A stretch of 64,000 nucleotides of DNA, taken from positions 186,001 through 250,000 of IMG/VR virus record IMGVR_UViG_3300035180_001778, one strand, 5' to 3'. The translations under genes and the position numbers were made by a program. Below are positions 52,905 to 64,000 of the stretch, one piece after another. A model generated the notes under the pieces. The model saw only the letters and a list, made by a program, of their open reading frames with translations, was not told the DNA's origin and made no database searches. The stretch's first letter is position 1; the number at the start of each line of letters is the position of its first letter.

Positions 52905-53099
52905 CTACGGGAAGACCTGCGTCAGCGACGTCATCGAGAAGATGGCGTAGTAGTTCCCGTCCAGCTCGCTGGACTCGTGGGTGCCGCCGCCGGTATACGT
53001 GCTCCATTGAGCGTCCGCTTCCGGGCGGGTGAGAGGGTCAGTGGAAAGGACAGTCCACCCGTCGTAGATGTCCCAGTAGTAGATGGCAAAGGTTTCCAT
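52905..53099 (-). CDS. Small hypothetical protein
   Basis: ORF ends just before the terminator hairpin. Confidence 0.45.
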   Translation of the reverse strand: METFAIYYWDIYDGWTVLSTDPLTRPEADAQWSTYTGGGTHESSELDGNYYAIFSMTSLTQVFP

Positions 53100-56775: not shown

Positions 56776-56860
56776 TGGCGGAAGAAGGAGGATTCGAACC
56801 CCGAGGTTTTTAGGCCCCAACTGTTTAGCAAACAGCCCCCAGCCCTGCTGGTCATCTTCC
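56776..56860 (-). tRNA. tRNA-Ser(GCU), 8/4 fold
   Basis: Acceptor GGAAGAUG/CUUCUUCC, 4-bp T-stem, long variable region, G73, CCA encoded. Confidence 0.85.
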
Positions 56861-56934
56861 AAGTCCCATCCCGCAGACCGTACCAAGGGCCCGCTTGCTT
56901 TTTGGTGGAAAGCCAGGCCGATGGGGAGCCTGAG

Positions 56935-57021
56935 CGGAAGAAGGAGGTCTTGATCCCCACCCCCATTTCTGGGAGCACACTGTTTTCGAGGCAGGTCCGA
57001 CCCCCGGTCGGTTCTTCTTCC
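56935..57021 (-). tRNA. tRNA-Ser(CGA), 8/4 fold, atypical T-loop
   Basis: Perfect 8-bp acceptor, T-loop AUCAAGA, CCA not encoded. Confidence 0.7.
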
Positions 57022-57037
57022 AAAGTGACCTCCCTCT

Positions 57038-57065
57038 GTTACACCGAAGTGTGAGGGACGGTCAA
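57038..57065 (-). promoter_or_regulatory. Phage promoter TTGACC-N16-TGTAAC upstream of the tRNA cluster
   Basis: Motif variant with identical spacing. Confidence 0.65.
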
Positions 57066-57072
57066 GGGTTTT

Positions 57073-57300
57073 CTACTTCCCGGCGTCGAGAAGCATCTTG
57101 CCCGTGGAGCTGGACGAAGACGAGCTGGAGGCCGTCGAGCTACCCGAGCTGGACGAGACCGAGCTGGAAGCCGAGCCGCCCGTTCCCGTGCTGGTCGTCG
57201 CGGTCGGTTGAACCGACGAGCAGGCGGACAGGATGATGGCACAAGCCAGAAGAGCGAGGGACTGCGTGAAACCCTTGAAAAGCATCGGGAAAGTCTCCAA
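57073..57300 (-). CDS. Small Ser/Thr-rich lipoprotein
   Basis: Signal peptide with lipobox LSAC; poly-Ser body. Confidence 0.55.
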   Translation of the reverse strand: METFPMLFKGFTQSLALLACAIILSACSSVQPTATTSTGTGGSASSSVSSSSGSSTASSSSSSSSTGKMLLDAGK

Positions 57301-57321
57301 TTCCGTTCCAATAGAAGCGAA

Positions 57322-57407
57322 TGGCGGAAGGCGGAGGAGTCGAACCCCAACGTGTCTAGCGCTCCCTGGCGTTCAAAACCAGTTTGCCTCCAATGGCGGC
57401 GCCTTCC
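57322..57407 (-). tRNA. tRNA-Ser(UGA), 8/4 fold
   Basis: Acceptor GGAAGGCG/CGCCUUCC, T-stem GGGG/CCUC, G73, CCA encoded. Confidence 0.85.
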
Positions 57408-57444
57408 AAGCGGACGTACTACCTACGTCCTTTCTACAAATCGA

Positions 57445-58026
57445 TCAAGGGTTTGTAGACGGAATCTCGATGTAGCCCCGGAAGGTAAGAGAGATCCTCT
57501 CACCACACTGCACGGGGCTCTTGGGGATCCTGTGCATGTGCGTGTTCTGCATCCCGGGGGCCATGAGGGCGAGGGACCCGTGCTGGAGCTTCAGCCGCTC
57601 GGGATCGAGCTGAACCGGAAGCTCAGGGCGAGCTTCCATGATCTGCTTGAACCAAATCTCGCGCTCGAATACAAGCGACACGATCCCGATGGGACGGGCG
57701 TCGTCCATCTCGGGCGAGTCATCGGCGTGCCACCCAAGCTGGTCCTTCTGATCCAGGTAGCGGTTGAGGAAGCAGACCTCGAAGGTCGCCCCCGTGAGCG
57801 CTTCGAGGTCCTTCCTGATCTCCCGGATGACGGGATGGTACGGACGAGGCTCGTACAGCCGGCGTCCCTTGCCCCGTCCGTAGACGTAGGGGGTCGGGGT
57901 GTCGTTGCAGTAGTACTCGCACCTGGGAGCGTCACCACGGCGCTCCCAGTCCAGATCATTCCGAAGAGCCGCGAACGCCTTGTCAGGGTCCGAGACGAAC
58001 TTGTAGGTGACGGGGGCCTTTTCCAT
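57445..58026 (-). CDS. AlkB-family 2OG-Fe(II) dioxygenase
   Basis: LNRY, GWHAD, H and RISLTFR motifs. Confidence 0.88.
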   Translation of the reverse strand: MEKAPVTYKFVSDPDKAFAALRNDLDWERRGDAPRCEYYCNDTPTPYVYGRGKGRRLYEPRPYHPVIREIRKDLEALTGATFEVCFLNRYLDQKDQLGWHADDSPEMDDARPIGIVSLVFEREIWFKQIMEARPELPVQLDPERLKLQHGSLALMAPGMQNTHMHRIPKSPVQCGERISLTFRGYIEIPSTNP

Positions 58027-58044
58027 GGGGTCTAGATACACCGA

Positions 58045-58224
58045 AGCGCTCCCCTTTGGGAGGGAGCTTGGACTCGGCGTTTGGGGGTCGTGGCGAGGTG
58101 AAGCGCGAGATCCCCATCCTATGGTCGGGCGGAGAATCCTGTTCGAGGCCTTCCGCGCGACACCGACCGGGGTTCCTGGTTGAGGACTCCCGGCTGTCCA
58201 AGCTCCCTTCCAGAAGGGAGCGCT
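58045..58224 (-). ncRNA. Structured ncRNA A: 180-nt rod with 29-nt closing stem (6S-like shape)
   Basis: 58045-58073 pairs with 58196-58224 (26/29 Watson-Crick); nested inner helices; own promoter. Confidence 0.6.
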
Positions 58225-58232
58225 GTGATCAT

Positions 58233-58260
58233 CCTACAGGTTGATGCCGCTGGGGATCAA
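58233..58260 (-). promoter_or_regulatory. Phage promoter TTGATC-N16-TGTAGG (ncRNA A)
   Basis: Exact motif, ending a few nt before the 5' end of the closing stem. Confidence 0.7.
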
Positions 58261-58264
58261 CCCG

Positions 58265-58545
58265 TTCGTTCGTATTCTGAGAAGAGTCCCCGAACAACCC
58301 CTTGGGACCAGCCTCAAGGCTGTTCGGGACACCGGGATCTCACCCCCAATGCTCTCTTGCCACGTTTTTCCGTCAGAACACCTGGTCGCGTCCTTGCGGC
58401 ACTCTTCGGAAGTCAGCTCGGTTTACGCCGAGCTGCTCCTCTCCGTGGGGACTGCCTTGTATGGCTCCCATCCCCATTCGAGAGCATTTCATGCTGACCG
58501 TGGGGTTTCCACAGTCGAGAGGACTCTTCTCAGAATACGAACGAA
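58265..58545 (-). ncRNA. Structured ncRNA B: multi-hairpin domain closed by a perfect 25-bp stem
   Basis: 58265-58289 is the exact reverse complement of 58521-58545; several hairpins with GNRA-like loops inside. Confidence 0.6.
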
Positions 58546-58547
58546 AC

Positions 58548-58626
58548 AACCAAGGGCGGATTCGAACCGCCTACCAATGGCGACCCTTTTGGAGAGTGCC
58601 CACCGCACCATGCGATGTCCTTGGTT
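58548..58626 (-). ncRNA. Atypical tRNA-like RNA, identity unclear
   Basis: Acceptor AACCAAG/CUUGGUU, perfect T-arm GGCGG-UUCGAAU-CCGCC, long D-stem, irregular anticodon arm. Confidence 0.55.
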
Positions 58627-58632
58627 AAAAAA

Positions 58633-58695
58633 CTGGGCGTCCTATCACTTAGACGACTCTCGTGAGAGAGGAAGGTGTCGAACCTTCATACCCAA
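58633..58695 (-). ncRNA. Circularly permuted tRNA-like module (T-arm, capped acceptor, D-arm)
   Basis: UUGGG-UAU-GAAGG UUCGACA CCUUC-CUCUC UCAC GAGAG-UC-GUCU AAGUGAUA GGAC-G-CCCAG. Confidence 0.6.
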
Positions 58696-58829
58696 CGGGG
58701 TGCCCGATACCAACGGACAGATGGGACTCGAACCCACCTCGACCCCTACTCTAAGAAGTCCGAACACGTTGGAAATTCACAGGTCTGCTTTCCACCGCAG
58801 AGCAAGCTTTAATCGTGTTCAGTCTTCGG

Positions 58830-58914
58830 TCGCAAGCCAGGGAGTCGAACCCCGCTTCACATCGATCACCTTGGAAGGCTGGCCGCCCGGCCACTTTTCG
58901 TCGATGCCCTGCGA
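58830..58914 (-). ncRNA. tRNA-like RNA with acceptor-like stem, T-arm and branched arm, lacking a D-arm
   Basis: UCGCAGG/CUUGCGA closing stem and CGGGG-UUCGACU-CCCUG arm; begins right after a promoter motif. Confidence 0.5.
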
Positions 58915-58921
58915 TGAGGGT

Positions 58922-58949
58922 CCTACAACGGGAGGACCTGCCCGATCAA
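58922..58949 (-). promoter_or_regulatory. Phage promoter TTGATC-N16-TGTAGG
   Basis: Exact motif and spacing. Confidence 0.7.
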
Positions 58950-58961
58950 CCTCAAAGACTT

Positions 58962-59348
58962 CTGAATAGTCGATCTGTGTGGCCGCTCAGGTGCAATCAC
59001 GGTAGTCATGTACCGGAGGATTGCCGATCCCGCCGCCTGGGTCTTCGGTCCGGGGGTGCCAGTTCGCCCTCTACGCTGGCACCCTTGTCCTTCCACACAG
59101 AATCAGAAACCTCAAGTCAGACCTACGTGGTCTTGACGTTGGCCGTTCCGGTGAGTCATGTCACCGAGGCTGCTCCCGCGTTGGCGTTGGGGTCTTGGGT
59201 CAGTGTTGGCGTCGAGTATCTTACCCACCTTGGAGGCATGGGTACCTTCTGAGCGCGCTTCTGACTTGTCCCTGCCACGCAGGCCTGACTTGAGGCGTCG
59301 TACTATTCAGTTGTCAATGACCGAGTCGGCTTTCGTTCTCCGTCTCGT
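58962..59348 (-). ncRNA. Structured ncRNA C (about 390 nt)
   Basis: 21-bp helix 59110-59130/59275-59295 with two G-U pairs on the minus strand; closing helix 58962-58970/59302-59310; twin CAUGAC-loop hairpins. Confidence 0.6.
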
Positions 59349-59354
59349 AGTAGT

Positions 59355-59382
59355 TCTACAGTCTGAGTCGTTCCCTGATCAA
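59355..59382 (-). promoter_or_regulatory. Phage promoter TTGATC-N16-TGTAGA (ncRNA C)
   Basis: Exact motif and spacing. Confidence 0.7.
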
Positions 59383-59402
59383 CCTCGGGGTGTTTTTTCT
59401 TG

Positions 59403-59551
59403 AGGTTCGGGTTGAGCAGAGCACAACCTTCGTGCTGACTCGAACAGCCACACCCAACCTTGGGATACCGGACTCGAACCGGAATACAGAGGCTTATGCT
59501 GCCCCTGTGAGATACCCTTCTCTCCAGTTGTGCTCTGCTCAACCCGAACCT
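59403..59551 (-). ncRNA. Structured ncRNA D: perfect 25-bp stem enclosing tRNA-like arms
   Basis: 59403-59427 is the exact reverse complement of 59527-59551; two UUCGAGU T-loops inside. Confidence 0.6.
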
Positions 59552-59553
59552 AG

Positions 59554-59638
59554 CGGAAGATAGAGGCGTCGAACCCCGGCAGATAAATCCGCCACACCGT
59601 TTTCCAAACGGGCCTCGCTCCGAGCGAGAATATCTTCC
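59554..59638 (-). tRNA. tRNA-Ser(GGA), 8/4 fold
   Basis: Acceptor GGAAGAUA/UAUCUUCC, 6-bp D-stem, long variable arm. Confidence 0.8.
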
Positions 59639-59644
59639 AAAACG

Positions 59645-59762
59645 TGGGGGAGTGTCCAGGAATCGAACCTGGCTAGCTTTTCAGCAGGTCATTGAGAGAA
59701 GGAGCATGTGGCCACATGCTCAAACCTCATAAAAACCCTCGTCTTCCAAGACGAACACTCCC
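59645..59762 (-). ncRNA. tRNA-His-like RNA with greatly extended anticodon arm
   Basis: G-1:C73-type acceptor with CCA, perfect T-arm, 118 nt long. Confidence 0.55.
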
Positions 59763-59764
59763 TT

Positions 59765-59834
59765 TTTGCCGAGGGGAGTTGAACCCCCAACCTTCCCCTT
59801 GTGGGGGATGTTCTACCATTGGAACTACGGCTAC
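59765..59834 (-). pseudogene. Degenerate tRNA
   Basis: Intact D- and T-arms, only a 4-bp acceptor, 5-nt anticodon loop CACAA. Confidence 0.55.
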
Positions 59835-60186
59835 ATCTTGAGGGGGAAGCGACTCTGGCCTTACCCGCGGCCCCCAAGGGGGCGGGCCAGAGTCTTTTCA
59901 CCAAGGCCGGCGACCCTGGACTTCACGGCCCCGCTGCCTTTGGCAGATTCGGGGTAGTCTTACTCGCCTTCATCAGGGGAGCCCGTTTGAGTTTTCCTGT
60001 GGAGGGGTAACTCAGAAACCCAGGGATGTTTTGGACGGCCTTATCCCACCGAGCCGCCAAGCCTCGCATTGTAGCCCGGTATCACCCGGGGGCTTGGTCT
60101 ACGCGGTCTTTGTCCCGCATGGTCATCTGCATGTTTTCACTGTATCTCCTTCCGTCTCCTTTTCGTTTCAGCGTCTCGATGTAACC

Positions 60187-60214
60187 TCTACAGGCCGACC
60201 CCCAAGACGATCAA
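60187..60214 (-). promoter_or_regulatory. Phage promoter TTGATC-N16-TGTAGA at the head of the RNA island
   Basis: Exact motif and spacing. Confidence 0.7.
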
Positions 60215-60230
60215 CCGAATCGGATCTTTT

Positions 60231-61156
60231 CTACTGCGTCTCGGAAATGACGCGGAGCGTATGGTAGAACTGCGGTGCGTCATTCTCGTTCGGGATCCCG
60301 GCGGAGTTGCCGTCGTTGACCTCGATCACCCACCACTTCCCCTCGACATCCTGTGCAATGTCCAGGGCAGCGAAGGGGGTGCCCAGACGAGCCCCCACAG
60401 CTTGGAGCCAGGAAGCCGGGGATGCGCGTCGATGCTCTCGATGTAGGTAGCCCCCTCCGTCCAGTACCGATAGGTCGCGAAGGGCTGCCCCCTCAAGAAG
60501 AAGGTGCGGAACTCCTGAACCAGGGGCATCCGGCTCTTCGTGTGAATGCCCACTTGCTTGAGGTTCAAGAACTCGCGGAAGACCAAGCCTCCGTAGAAGT
60601 CGTCACCCTGCAACCGGATGAAGTTCGAAGCGACTCGGGTCACCTCCGTGGCGTCGCTCGCATCACGGATGAAGCAGGCGTCGAACCACTCGTGCTTCCG
60701 GCTCTTGAGGAAGTCCTTCACCATCACCGGCTTCGGGCCGAAGTTCATCTCCACAAGTGCGGCGACCTGCTCCATGGTCGGAGGCTTCTTCCACGAGATG
60801 ATCGAAGACCTCGGCGTCAGCTCCTTCAGATCGGCGTACCACCGAGGGAGGTCGTGCGACCACATGTAGTTCTCGGGGGTCGTGAGAAGACCCGGGACCA
60901 GCTCGACGAGCTGCTCGAACTCTTGGGGCTTGAGAATACACCCCCGGTAGAGAGCCGGACCCTTGATGCCGCTCCAGTGCTGTCGGTTGAGTGCCTCGTT
61001 TTCGGGAGTCACTCGGAAGGGCTCCCCGAAGACCCCGCCGCTCAAGAACGCGATCTGAAATCCAACCGAACGCGCAACTTCGATCTCGCCCACCCAGGAC
61101 GGGTCAGGAGTTCGGATCGTTCCGGGTTGTGCGGGGAATACCAGAGTGCAGTCCAT
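60231..61156 (-). pseudogene. ATP-grasp (R2K-like) protein, frameshifted near 60420
   Basis: VKDFLKSRKHEW and EFRTFF are in frame; the conserved tail LDIAQ...WWVIEVNDG is in the -1 frame and ends at TAG 60231-60233. Confidence 0.75.
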
Positions 61157-61163
61157 GGGAGCC

Positions 61164-61778
61164 TCAGCGGGGGTTCAGATTCTCGCAGAGCATGTTCATG
61201 AACATCTCGCCCTGCTCGATCGCATCGTCAATAGCGACGTGCGTGTGCCTCTTCTTCGAGAACCAGCGCTTCGGCATGGTCCTCTTGGTCGTCCCGCGGT
61301 AGGGCAGGCGTAGGACAGCGCTCGCGTAGGACTTCACGTCCATGGCCGAGAAGCTGAACGGGCTCATCCCACCGAAGTACATGAGGTACCAGTACACGAA
61401 CAGGAAGTCGAAGCCCGCCGGATACCCAACGAACACGAGGTTCGTCGAGGTCCCAGACGGAACCAAGAGGTTGACTCCCGGTAGCTTCTGGAGCCAGGTG
61501 CAATACCTGCCCATGGCCTCAAGAGGTTCCTCCTGATCCTTCTGGCAGGCATCCCACGCCGCGGGTTGCGTCTTCCACCAGGCCATCGTATCAGGATGGC
61601 CCGCAGCACCCAGTAGGGGTTTCAGGTTCGCGGAGAAGCCTCCGAGGAAAACCTTCTCGTAACGTCCGTTGGTCTCTCGAAGCACAAAGGCAGCGGAGCC
61701 GATGCTCAGCATCGAGTGAGGCCCGGGAATGGGGCCATCGGCCTCGATGTCGGTGCTGACGTAAATCTCAGTAGTCAT
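61164..61778 (-). CDS. DEDDh 3'-5' exoribonuclease (RNase AS/Rv2179c-like)
   Basis: STDIEADGP, GFDF and HVAIDDA motifs. Confidence 0.8.
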   Translation of the reverse strand: MTTEIYVSTDIEADGPIPGPHSMLSIGSAAFVLRETNGRYEKVFLGGFSANLKPLLGAAGHPDTMAWWKTQPAAWDACQKDQEEPLEAMGRYCTWLQKLPGVNLLVPSGTSTNLVFVGYPAGFDFLFVYWYLMYFGGMSPFSFSAMDVKSYASAVLRLPYRGTTKRTMPKRWFSKKRHTHVAIDDAIEQGEMFMNMLCENLNPR

Positions 61779-61785
61779 TGACCTG

Positions 61786-62064
61786 TCAGTACACCAAAAC
61801 ACCCGCCGCCTGAGCAAGCGCGATCAGAGCTTCATCGACCGTCCCAGCATGCTCGTGCGTCAGAACGATGGTCTCCGACTTGGGGGTGTTGAAGTCAGAG
61901 CCGTAGAGCCGCTCCTTCCGGACCACGGACGCGGACACAGTGTCACAGCCGTCGAAGTTCAGGGGGTGGGGTTCGCACTCAACACGAACGACATAATCTT
62001 CCGACCGCTCGCGCTTCAGGTAGAATGCGTTGACGATCTTTCGGCACAAAGCCATGTATTCCAT
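61786..62064 (-). CDS. Hypothetical protein
   Basis: GGTGTA-N9-ATG; the longer ORF would overlap a tRNA. Confidence 0.5.
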   Translation of the reverse strand: MEYMALCRKIVNAFYLKRERSEDYVVRVECEPHPLNFDGCDTVSASVVRKERLYGSDFNTPKSETIVLTHEHAGTVDEALIALAQAAGVLVY

Positions 62065-62081
62065 GGCTAGCCATACACCAG

Positions 62082-62168
62082 CGGAAGAAGGAGGAGTCGA
62101 ACCCCGGGCAGGTTTCCCCACCCACTTCGCTTTCCAAGCGAGCCCCGCTCCGAGCAGGAACATCTTCC
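62082..62168 (-). tRNA. tRNA-Ser(GGA), 8/4 fold (second copy)
   Basis: Acceptor GGAAGAUG/CUUCUUCC, T-stem GGGG/CCUC, long variable arm. Confidence 0.8.
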
Positions 62169-62964: not shown

Positions 62965-63525
62965 TCAGCCCGAGGCCTGGTTCTGCTGGAACCCCACGAG
63001 GAAGGGTTCCCAGAGGTCCGACTTGACGTCATGCCGGATCTGGGGAGCCCCCAACGGCAGAGTCTTCGGAGCGTGCGGATGCGCGATGCCCTTCCACGTT
63101 GCCGGGGGCTTGAGCCTCATGCCCGCTTCTGCCGGCGTGCGACCAGCCTTGCGGCCGTTGCACGGGTAGCAGCTCGTCACGATGTTCTCCCACACCGTCT
63201 TCCCACCCTGGCGCCTCGGAACCACATGGTCGTAGTTCAGGTCCTTCCGCGACTTGGTGGTGCCGCAGTAGCAGCACATGAAGTTGTCGCGAGCGAAGAC
63301 GTTCTCCCGTGAGAACTTGACGCCCCGCTTGCGATACGGGACGACCTTCTTGAGCATGGCGACCGCGGGCATCTTGACGACCTGCCCATCACGCTCGCAG
63401 AGGACCTCGTCGTACTCTTCCAGGATTTGGATTTTGCCGTTGCAGAAGTCGACCATTGCGACCTGCCACGGCACGACTCTGTGTGGGGCCATCCACGAGT
63501 TCAAGATCAGCGTATGCGAGTTCAT
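62965..63525 (-). CDS. HNH endonuclease (McrA-like)
   Basis: Start MNSH at 63525; FSRENVFARDNFMCCYCG, DHVVP and WENIVTSCYPCN motifs. Confidence 0.88.
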   Translation of the reverse strand: MNSHTLILNSWMAPHRVVPWQVAMVDFCNGKIQILEEYDEVLCERDGQVVKMPAVAMLKKVVPYRKRGVKFSRENVFARDNFMCCYCGTTKSRKDLNYDHVVPRRQGGKTVWENIVTSCYPCNGRKAGRTPAEAGMRLKPPATWKGIAHPHAPKTLPLGAPQIRHDVKSDLWEPFLVGFQQNQASG

Positions 63526-63577: not shown

Positions 63578-63654
63578 TGGTGCCCGCCGGGGGATTCGAA
63601 CCCCCAACCTTCCGTTTTTGAGGCGGACGCCGCTGCCAGTTGGGCTAGACGGGC
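63578..63654 (-). tRNA. tRNA-Leu(CAA) with short variable loop
   Basis: Acceptor GCCCGUC/GGCGGGC, A73, CCA, loop CUCAAAA, 5-nt variable region. Confidence 0.75.
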
Positions 63655-63708: not shown

Positions 63709-64000
63709 TGGAGCTGCCGGGAATCGAACCCGGGTCCGCAAAGCTTCCGTTCCGCTTTCGTTTACGTGCGTAGCCGCCATATCCCTGGCGGCTGGGTTCG
63801 CGGATTTGGCCGCGAACTATCTCGTCTGCTTGTCTCGAAGGGGTAGCCGCCGAGCACGCTTCCCCTTCCAGCCCTGTGGGTTGACACCGGAAATCCAGCT
63901 ACTAGGACGATCTTGCTGGCCGATGGTCACTACGCAGCCATCTGCATGGGGACGAGAGCGTTGTCGTTCGCAGGTATACGTCTCGATTGATTACGGCGGG
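63709..64000 (-). ncRNA. ssrA: tmRNA (5' end outside the window); tag ANDNALVPMQMAA
   Basis: 3' end GCGGACCCGGGUUCGAUUCCCGGCAGCUCCA; tag ORF 63971-63930 ends in AA followed by stop. Confidence 0.9.

Follow-up and report, generated by a model that had tools for sequence, protein, structure and literature searches.

Genetic-code engineering prizes the 8/4 fold and uses allo-tRNA as a chassis. In nature, an (8/4) tRNASer class is already on record: Mukai et al. (2017, PMC5389517) reported it from bacteria as well as phages. The 8/4 and 9/3 tRNAs of that study were active in translation in Escherichia coli, and its allo-tRNA(UAU) variants were inactive there. A second relevant system is the L-array, which Santamaria-Gomez et al. 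(2021, PMC8421152) present as a dense, horizontally transferred run of supernumerary tRNA genes, often accompanied by a homing-type (HNH) endonuclease. The locus described here is a clean new example of the known, if unusual, (8/4) tRNASer class and not a new kind of tRNA. What it offers is a complete natural 8/4 serine set: a single huge phage carries all four anticodon families, and four further huge phages carry relatives.

The window, a stretch of 64,000 nucleotides, comes from a 350-kb IMG/VR phage record (IMGVR_UViG_3300035180_001778) that is 73% complete and originates from microbial mats. In the phage, some 40-41 tRNA genes and a tmRNA form an array of about 23 kb, interspersed with protein genes. 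A first-pass annotation of this DNA had placed five tRNA-Ser genes here (GCU, CGA, UGA, and GGA twice), together covering all six serine codons, and the sequence confirms both the genes and their positions. When the 350-kb genome is searched with R1, a covariance model of the 8/4 structure, exactly these five are retrieved, at 58.7-75.4 bits and E values of 1e-9 to 1e-12, the next match scoring 29.5 bits. In the following list, tRNA coordinates span G1 to G73, plus CCA wherever it is encoded.

56776-56860, minus strand: tRNA-Ser(GCU); 8-position acceptor with a U7.U66 mismatch, 5-bp D-stem, G73, CCA encoded (ARAGORN, exact sequence, R1 70.8 bits, minimum-energy fold 8/4)
56935-57021, minus strand: tRNA-Ser(CGA); 8/8 Watson-Crick acceptor, 6-bp D-stem, G73, CCA not encoded (sequence, R1 58.7 bits, minimum-energy fold 8/4; missed by ARAGORN and Rfam)
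57322-57407, minus strand: tRNA-Ser(UGA); 8/8 Watson-Crick acceptor, G73, CCA encoded (sequence, R1 75.4 bits, the genome's top match, tRNA-Sec model 25.4 bits)
59554-59638, minus strand: tRNA-Ser(GGA) copy a; 8/8 Watson-Crick acceptor, 6-bp D-stem, G73, CCA not encoded (sequence, minimum-energy fold 8/4, R1 67.1 bits, tRNA-Sec model 35.6 bits)
62082-62168, minus strand: tRNA-Ser(GGA) copy b; U7.U66 mismatch, 6-bp D-stem, G73, CCA not encoded (ARAGORN, sequence, R1 69.3 bits)
62965-63525: HNH endonuclease, inside the tRNA array of the window

The five genes split the 12-bp acceptor/T helix as 8+4, not 7+5, as had been proposed from the letters alone. All of them share the acceptor ends 5' GGAAG and 3' CUUCC-G73 and a 4-bp T-stem, GGGG/CCUC. 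The 8:65 pair is present in 5/5 genes, as G-C in four and as a covarying A-U in GGA copy a, and the 49:65 pair is present in none (appositions C.C, U.C, U.C, C.U, and C.C). The longer D-stems noted in four genes are also borne out: minimum-energy folds give 5 bp in GCU and 6 bp in CGA and both GGA copies, with 3-nt loops. The exception is UGA, whose D-stem is short (about 3-4 bp, GCC/GGC type); given that stem, the UGA member is an (8/4) tRNASer outside the allo type. In four genes the folds include a variable-arm stem of 4-7 bp (7 bp in CGA), and the 4-bp stem of UGA was read by hand from the sequence. Unconstrained minimum-energy folding yields 8/4 for GCU, CGA, and GGA copy a; for UGA and GGA copy b it gives no full 8/4 cloverleaf.

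Relatives carry the same signal. Among 136 distinct family members, the 8:65 pair occurs in all (GC in 88, AU in 30, UA in 13, CG in 4, and GU in 1), both sides having changed in 47 members, and the 49:65 pair occurs in 21; serine anticodons are found in 131 and G73 in 129. The covariation score for the whole 8/4 structure is 0.473, compared with 0.145 for shuffled controls and at most 0.115 for slid controls. An alignment of 23 sequences with a hand-given structure took the place of a MAFFT alignment of the five genes alone, which misaligned the 5' end of GCU.

By wobble, the four anticodons (GCU, CGA, UGA, and GGA) cover 6/6 serine codons. Their loops (UUGCUAA, CUCGAAA, UUUGAAC, and UUGGAAA) are ordinary, 7 nt each, and the same as, or one base off, the Polyangium housekeeping serine loops of matched anticodon. 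The CGA gene has a C31.A39 closing mismatch and an unusual T-loop, AUCAAGA (A54), that recurs in the CGA tRNA of G005, an unrelated phage with a complete genome of 393 kb. Pairwise identity among the five is 49-60%, except for the GGA pair at 72%, and every gene is nearer to a same-anticodon 8/4 tRNA elsewhere than to its siblings in the window; GGA copy b, for example, is 77% identical to the GGA tRNA of G005.

Standard tools see little of this set. ARAGORN calls two of the five genes, GCU and GGA copy b. The canonical Rfam model RF00005 scores the same two at 16.3 and 15.0 bits, respectively, and gives no match at E<=1 for CGA, UGA, or GGA copy a, so that all five lie under its gathering score of 29. 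The tRNA-Sec model RF01852 matches four of the five at 25.4-36.7 bits against a gathering score of 47, with CGA unmatched. With three of the five genes escaping standard tRNA finders, routine annotation under-counts the serine decoding capacity of phages.

How widespread is the family? One sequence pattern matches at least 120 IMG/VR contigs, and complete 8/4 serine sets, of four or five genes, occur in four other huge-phage records (G004, G005, G006, and G007). The first-pass annotation was thus correct that 8/4 serine tRNAs are known from bacteria and phages, and it overstated the case in calling them rare. Among the long tRNAs of G005 detected by the canonical model, we found no canonical tRNASer. 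Not every phage serine tRNA is 8/4, since the tRNA-Ser of Aeromonas phage MQM1, a BLAST match, proved to be canonical 7/5. A scan of 185,579 species genomes finds the pattern in 107 stretches, which belong mostly to Myxococcota and Phycisphaerae, and the bacterial 8/4 serine copies, from several phyla, sit in arrays of 11-30 tRNA genes. In a tree of 131 family members, clustering by anticodon is weak (49 label changes, compared with about 65-70 when shuffled), and we therefore leave the order of isoacceptor divergence unclaimed.

The phage's tmRNA points to a Polyangia-like (Myxococcota) host, by inference rather than identification. The CGA tRNA of the phage shares 74-76% identity with Polyangiaceae and Polyangium array tRNAs. 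The likely host lineage does differ in fold from the phage set, as the earlier reading supposed: in Polyangium jinanense, Archangium gephyra, and a Phycisphaeraceae chromosome, the housekeeping serine sets are canonical 7/5, of the GGAGAG type, and the 8/4 genes are extra copies within tRNA arrays. Serine is represented in horizontally moving tRNA arrays by the 8/4 genes, and the cells that bear such arrays keep canonical 7/5 housekeeping genes. We found this contrast stated in neither PMC5389517 nor PMC8421152, and it makes one question directly testable: is the 8/4 fold neutral baggage, or is it a mark that separates mobile from host tRNAs?

The rest of the phage array puts the serine genes in context. 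The fold is essentially serine specific: it is shared by all five serine tRNAs, and of the 38 other phage tRNAs tested, 33 are compatible with 7/5 alone; an odd tRNA body is seen in serine only, perhaps also in Gly(UCC) and Trp. Most amino acids are served by near-complete tRNA sets, a breadth that tells against the suggestion of a special replacement of serine decoding. A canonical tRNASer could sit in the missing part of the 73%-complete phage record. Irregular tRNA-like RNAs are interspersed between the 8/4 serine genes. A structured noncoding stretch at 58.0-60.3 kb has no Rfam family match (at gathering scores or at E<=10) and no homologues in 2 Mb of compared loci, save in the identical record G004. 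An Rv2179c-like 3'-5' exoribonuclease and an AlkB-like dioxygenase are also encoded among the tRNA genes; the sole diverged relative of the AlkB-like gene (L285, 59% amino acid identity) is without nearby tRNAs. The phage also encodes a tRNA(UCA) at another site, on account of which a recoded genetic code was considered; since the standard code already gives 80% long-frame coverage and TGA is the most frequent frame end, an alternative code is not claimed. The 8/4 gene sequences are identical in four metagenome DNA runs and in a second IMG/VR record, and the four runs hold no informative variants or polymorphism in these genes.

In total, these observations make it probable that the five are working serine isoacceptor genes of the described (8/4) tRNASer/allo-tRNA class and that their fold is an inherited trait of a mobile family. 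In this model, all five would be charged with serine because the host SerRS is expected to read the variable arm and the discriminator and to ignore the anticodon and the 7/5 boundary; the three tRNAs whose genes lack an encoded CCA would receive it from a CCA-adding enzyme of the host. Searches of the 73%-complete phage record found no class II synthetase core (PF00587, SerRS-type), CCA-adding enzyme (PF01743), Ro60/TROVE (PF05731), or RtcB (PF01139), and because the first two were not found, host enzymes would be needed. EF-Tu and the ribosome would accept the tRNAs because the coaxial helix stays at its normal 12-bp length, as Mukai et al. found for 8/4 and 9/3 tRNAs in E. coli. By analogy with published assays on other family members (PMC5389517), the five would be charged and used on the ribosome, jointly supplying the decoding of all six serine codons during infection. 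Phage serine codon usage is TCG.31, TCC.22, AGC.22, TCT.13, TCA.07, and AGT.055, and UCC and UCU, 35% of the total, would be read by the pair of GGA tRNAs. Features that sit less easily with working genes are the A54 T-loop and C31.A39 of CGA and the U7.U66 of GCU and GGA copy b.

As for its origin, we posit that this tRNASer gene family spreads horizontally as part of tRNA arrays, phage and chromosomal alike (L-arrays), and that the 8/4 fold is tolerated because it makes no difference to SerRS. The fold is most simply inherited from the family and need not be a phage adaptation. The idea of a neutral family trait is argued from distribution, and the strict tie of 8/4 to mobile arrays could itself reflect selection.

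Several other readings must be weighed against this one. Were the true fold 7/5 with mismatches, the 8/4 reading would be an artefact of inspection; the U.U at position 7 in two of the five genes and the incomplete unconstrained folds of UGA and GGA copy b lean that way, but a fifth T-stem pair is impossible in all five, and the eighth acceptor pair is kept throughout the relatives in four Watson-Crick types, which leaves this reading extremely improbable. Could the genes be decayed copies or regulatory tRNA-like RNAs outside translation, comparable to the inactive allo-tRNA(UAU) group? The odd CGA T-loop and the irregular RNAs lying between the serine genes would fit, yet every stem is intact, with covariation throughout the family, the anticodons are exactly the four required for serine, the odd T-loop is conserved in an unrelated complete phage, and the sequences do not vary between runs and records; we consider this highly unlikely. 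It is also very unlikely that the phage mirrors a host that itself decodes serine with 8/4 tRNAs. Such genes do exist in bacteria, above all in Myxococcota and Phycisphaerae, and the CGA tRNA resembles Polyangiaceae array tRNAs, but we reject the idea because the full housekeeping sets of all three genomes are 7/5, their 8/4 genes are extra array copies, and the pattern is confined to 107 stretches across the species genomes.

Evasion of defence, the explanation that the first-pass annotation proposed in the form of serine tRNA-targeting toxins, takes two forms. In one, the 8/4 body and long D-stem make a poor substrate for a host or competitor nuclease or toxin that acts on 7/5 tRNASer; in the other, the phage itself makes an activity that destroys host tRNASer, and the 8/4 body protects the phage tRNAs from it. 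Neutralization of tRNA-targeting defences by phage tRNAs is known (PMC10264068, PMC11555353, PMC11464382), the 8/4 serine genes are bound to mobile arrays and the cellular set is 7/5, the entire phage serine set has the fold, and the exoribonuclease and dioxygenase lie amid the tRNA genes. Against this, no serine-specific tRNA toxin or defence gene is tied to phage or host, RtcB was not found in the phage record, the documented route of escape is alteration of the anticodon loop (PMC10264068) and the phage serine loops are ordinary, and a general body-recognizing nuclease should select on all tRNAs, not serine and perhaps two others. Taken jointly, the two forms are unlikely. Equally doubtful is that the 8/4 body and tRNASec-like D-arm are a selected "mobile-element signature," orthogonal to a factor acting on 7/5 tRNASer. 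If that were true, phages and transferable tRNA arrays would retain the fold across their entire serine set, and serine decoding would survive an attack on the host tRNASer set; the factor could be a nuclease or toxin of a defence system, or an activity made by the phage to eliminate host tRNASer. Inheritance within a mobile tRNASer gene family accounts for the fold better than toxin evasion does.

Set beside known systems, the phage genes share with canonical class II (7/5) tRNASer a GGAAG-type acceptor start, a long variable arm, and G73, and the anticodon loops are the same; in the canonical form, however, U8 is unpaired, the T-stem has 5 bp, and a D-stem of 3 bp closes a large loop. With bacterial tRNASec (RF01852) they share an 8-bp acceptor, a 6-bp D-stem with a short loop, a long variable arm, and expected charging by SerRS; tRNASec, however, has an 8/5 branch of 13 bp and a UCA anticodon, and the phage genes, with scores below 47 bits, serine anticodons, and a 12-bp 8/4 branch, fall outside it. 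The dense supernumerary tRNA run, the HNH endonuclease, and the relatives in bacterial arrays of 11-30 genes that adjoin a normal housekeeping set all resemble L-arrays, except that this array is phage borne and broken up by protein genes; term searches of PMC8421152 gave no mention of an 8/4 serine fold. The closest match is the class of Mukai et al. (PMC5389517), whose 8/4 branch, long variable arm, G73, and serine anticodon are all present, with the tRNASec-like D-arm in four of the five genes and a short D-stem retained in the UGA member. In that class, the long variable arm and a G73 or U73 discriminator make up the SerRS identity set. No (8/4) tRNAHis was found beside the phage serine genes. 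Nothing essential separates them from (8/4) tRNASer/allo-tRNA; what sets the locus apart is that all four serine anticodon families, as five genes, occur together in one 350-kb phage.

A search for the motif GGAAG...CUUCC-N4 confirms the proposal of the first-pass annotation that five tRNA-Ser genes, with anticodons GCU, CGA, UGA, GGA, and GGA, lie in the window at the following positions.

56776-56860, minus strand: tRNA-Ser(GCU)
56935-57021, minus strand: tRNA-Ser(CGA)
57322-57407, minus strand: tRNA-Ser(UGA)
59554-59638, minus strand: tRNA-Ser(GGA)a
62082-62168, minus strand: tRNA-Ser(GGA)b

All five carry the discriminator G73, and CCA is encoded in two of them (GCU and UGA). ARAGORN detects two of the five; the canonical Rfam tRNA model gives these two 16.3 and 15.0 bits and does not match the other three, and the Rfam tRNA-Sec model gives four of the five 25-37 bits, below its threshold of 47, and misses the CGA gene. 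When the genome is searched with R1, a covariance model with an explicit 8/4 structure trained on the five genes and 18 diverse viral relatives, exactly five matches are returned (58.7-75.4 bits), and the next match scores 29.5 bits.

The 8/4 reading (an 8-bp acceptor and a 4-bp T-stem) and the canonical 7/5 reading differ solely in the partner of nucleotide 65, which is nucleotide 8 in the former and nucleotide 49 in the latter. Nucleotides 8 and 65 form a Watson-Crick pair in every one of the five genes (G-C in four, A-U in one), and 49:65 is a pyrimidine-pyrimidine clash in each; positions 6, 7, and 8 covary across the set, and three of the genes take the 8/4 cloverleaf in unconstrained minimum-energy folding. 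The family alignment comprises 150 R1 matches, 136 of them distinct, drawn from phage contigs and bacterial genomes. Every one of the 136 distinct relatives has a standard 8:65 pair (GC 88, AU 30, UA 13, CG 4, GU 1), which is changed on both sides in 47 of them, and just 21 have a 49:65 pair. The whole-structure covariation score is 0.473, versus 0.145 for shuffled controls and at most 0.115 for controls in which partners were slid by 1-3 columns. Thus, the comparative pairing and covariation evidence argues that the 8/4 fold of these genes is well supported.

Is this body shared by the other tRNAs of the phage? The fold check for which the first-pass annotation had called was run as an 8:65 versus 49:65 test, and 33 of the 38 other ARAGORN tRNAs fit 7/5 only. 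Trp(CCA), Gln(UUG), and one Phe(GAA) are compatible with either fold, and Glu(UUC) and one Tyr with neither. Gly(UCC), at genome 252866-252940 (minus strand, outside the window), reads as 8/4 only, in that C65 can pair with G8 but not with U49; minimum-energy folding gives 9/3, and this nonserine tRNA with a short variable arm is the genome's top match to the tRNA-Sec model (43 bits). Given these results on the 38 other tRNAs, the odd body is essentially confined to the serine genes in this phage.

Several other tRNAs are unusual in their own right. The tRNA-Trp(CCA) at 58546-58627 (minus strand) has a tRNASec-like body with a 6-7-bp D-stem, an acceptor/T branch that can be read as 7/5, 8/4, or 9/4, an A.G mismatch in the anticodon stem, and G73, and the tRNA-Sec model gives it 40.6 bits versus 20.8 from the tRNA model. 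Sizes unexpected for bacteria occur at genome 249578-252388 and 264640-264709 (mostly outside the window) and at window 63578-63654: the Leu genes (CAA, GAG, CAG, UAG, UAA) are 72-77 nt and have no long variable arm, a Tyr(GUA) gene measures 70 nt, and an Ile(GAU) gene of 84 nt combines A73 with a long variable region. A Polyangium tRNA array also contains short Leu(CAA/UAG) genes. A canonical tRNA of 73 nt at genome 302161-302233 (plus strand, outside the window) carries the anticodon UCA (64.7 bits on Rfam tRNA; labeled SeC by ARAGORN) and is a possible opal suppressor. We do not claim an alternative code on this account, since long frames already cover 80% under the standard code and end most often in TGA.

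The source IMG/VR record is linear, 350,469 bp long, and 73% complete by CheckV, with a GC content of ~59%. Across it, ARAGORN counts 41 tRNA genes and one tmRNA; 40 of the 41 lie on the minus strand at genome 242.6-265.7 kb, and the Ser genes open this array. The window stretch is not an assembly artifact, because DNA identical at every base is found in four metagenome runs (sediment or microbial mat) and is also carried by a second IMG/VR record, G004. Genes for the following products are interleaved with the Ser tRNA genes.

HNH endonuclease
Rv2179c-like 3'-5' exoribonuclease
R2K ATP-grasp protein
AlkB-like 2OG-Fe(II) oxygenase
GroEL-like chaperonin

Between two of the Ser genes, at 57073-57285 (minus strand), is a 70-amino-acid open reading frame with a lipoprotein-like signal followed by a mostly Ser tract with some Thr and Gly; no Pfam family scores above threshold in it, and it may be a chance frame.

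Also between Ser genes is an unusual 2.2-kb stretch (58,045-60,230) without convincing genes. It contains four long-range inverted repeats, each enclosing a highly structured domain of 150-280 nt; the arms measure 21-29 nt, and in two of the repeats they are perfect 25-mers. The domains, identified by inverted repeat and fold, are as follows.

58045-58224, minus strand: structured domain 1
58265-58545, minus strand: structured domain 2
59110-59295, minus strand: structured domain 3
59403-59551, minus strand: structured domain 4

The whole 350-kb genome has only four perfect inverted repeats whose arms reach 16 nt or more at a spacing of 40-450 nt, and this stretch accounts for two of them. The minimum free energies of the four domains are -82 to -150 kcal/mol (z-scores, -5.6 to -11.4); two domains begin 1-3 nt past the 3' ends of tRNA-Trp and tRNA-Ser(GGA)a, and the domain at 59403-59551 has a cloverleaf-like core with two T-arm-like hairpins. 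The domains match no Rfam family, no Ro60 gene was found in the phage record, and the 2 Mb of loci compared contain no homologue of the stretch except the near-identical G004. The domains may serve as processing stems of the RNase III type or represent a new tRNA-linked RNA.

The same stretch also has tRNA-like RNAs unable to decode. One, at 59645-59762 (minus strand), has an acceptor of 7-8 bp, a T-arm of 5 bp with the loop UUCGAUU, a D-stem of 6 bp closed by a 4-nt loop, and an encoded 3' CCA. In place of the anticodon loop it has an irregular arm of 43 nt, whose tip is a perfect palindromic hairpin of 8 bp, and as drawn the RNA cannot decode. Its neighbor at 59764-59834 (minus strand; Rfam tRNA, 37.3 bits; no ARAGORN call) has two acceptor-stem mismatches and an anticodon loop of just 5 nt (or CCACAAG with C33) and is possibly a decayed tRNA.

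How did the serine set arise? Pairwise identity among the five genes is 49-60% (72% for the two GGA copies), and each has a closer same-anticodon relative elsewhere. The closest relative of GCU is a gene in a 132,885-bp IMG/VR record (identity, 0.74), that of GGA-b is the GGA gene of another huge-phage record, G005 (0.77), and those of CGA are tRNAs of Polyangiaceae arrays (0.76). The closer relatives elsewhere rule out recent local duplication and, with the low mutual identity, argue that the set is old and moves as a set. In a tree of 131 members, itself short and weak, anticodon labels cluster weakly (49 changes versus ~65-70 when shuffled), which would be compatible with easy anticodon switching under an anticodon-blind synthetase. 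The unusual T-loop AUCAAGA of the window CGA gene (56935-57021) also occurs in the G005 CGA gene, and this recurrence argues for conservation, not decay. AUCAAGA and AUCGAGA T-loops are kept in the CGA and UGA 8/4 Ser tRNAs of the two unrelated huge phages (G005:51848-51932 and 52906-52994); they have A54 in place of U54 and A60 in place of a pyrimidine, two positions that also set apart eukaryotic initiator tRNA.

The array's tmRNA bears on the likely host.

63709-64000, continuing to genome 250060, minus strand: tmRNA, tag ANDNALVPMQMAA

Its identity to the tmRNA of Polyangium jinanense (tag ANDNAYALAA) is 70%, versus 54-60% for the tmRNAs of Archangium, Acidobacteriaceae, Phycisphaeraceae, and Leptolyngbya. 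By BLAST, it has matches in 13 of 301 sampled Myxococcota genomes (best in Polyangium, 82% over 130 nt) and in 0 of 251 Planctomycetota genomes. Same-anticodon tRNA identity is 0.70 for Polyangium and Byssovorax arrays, slightly above the 0.64-0.65 of others. With moderate confidence, we propose a Polyangia-like host, a proposal that reflects likely gene origin and is not an identification.

The gene sequences directly show a cloverleaf with its identity elements and a full set of Ser anticodons. SerRS identity consists of the long variable arm plus G73/U73, and Escherichia coli translation accepts 8/4 and 9/3 tRNAs (PMC5389517). Thus, we posit that host SerRS would charge all five tRNAs, that the host CCA-adding enzyme would complete the three without an encoded CCA, and that the 12-bp coaxial helix would allow EF-Tu and the ribosome to use them as normal elongators. 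Neither a SerRS-type core nor a CCA enzyme of the phage was found in the 73%-complete record. The number of genes per codon group agrees with codon usage in the phage itself: UCG (31% of Ser codons) is read by CGA and UGA, UCC plus UCU (35%) by the two GGA genes, and AGC plus AGU (27%) by GCU.

Could the fold also protect? The first-pass annotation had suggested that it may evade toxins directed at tRNA-Ser. Defenses that target tRNA can be defeated by phage tRNAs (PMC10264068, PMC11555353, PMC11464382), but the usual target and usual site of escape is the anticodon loop, which is ordinary in these genes, and nothing in this analysis links the fold to any toxin; nor was RtcB found in the 73%-complete phage record. 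Mobile 8/4 and housekeeping 7/5 tRNASer do differ in structure; however, the 8/4 trait is common to phages and arrays of very different hosts, and inheritance fits this at least as well as adaptation. We consider evasion quite unlikely.

The T-arm/acceptor pattern common to the five Ser genes matches at least 120 IMG/VR contigs, one of the matches sitting in a 132,885-bp record; among the matches listed, 92 of the 117 parsed have the 8:65 pair without 49:65. R1 finds 8/4 Ser genes GCU, GGA, UGA, and CGA in G005 (393 kb, terminal repeats, 100% complete), four in G006 (416 kb), and five in G007 (182 kb), the last two also huge-phage records; none of the long tRNAs detected by the canonical model in G005 is a canonical Ser. 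By BLAST, the GCU gene matches an annotated tRNA-Ser of Streptomyces phage Bmoc. The tRNA-Ser of Aeromonas phage MQM1 is canonical, so phage tRNA-Ser is not always 8/4. A stricter pattern excluding the 49:65 pair finds just 107 stretches in 185,579 bacterial and archaeal species genomes, mostly Myxococcota and Phycisphaerae, with some Acidobacteriaceae, Actinomycetota, Cyanobacteria, and Armatimonadota. The bacterial 8/4 Ser genes sit within dense arrays of 11-30 tRNA genes, and a full canonical 7/5 housekeeping Ser set is also present in Archangium gephyra, a Phycisphaeraceae chromosome, and Polyangium jinanense.

Acceptor branches of the 8/4 and 9/3 types were described by Mukai et al. in 2017 (PMC5389517). 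The window genes have all the sequence-level features of the (8/4) class in that report and, judged on these, belong to an already published class. The bacterial arrays with 8/4 Ser genes, in turn, match the L-arrays, long tRNA arrays that spread horizontally, of Santamaria-Gomez et al. (2021, PMC8421152).
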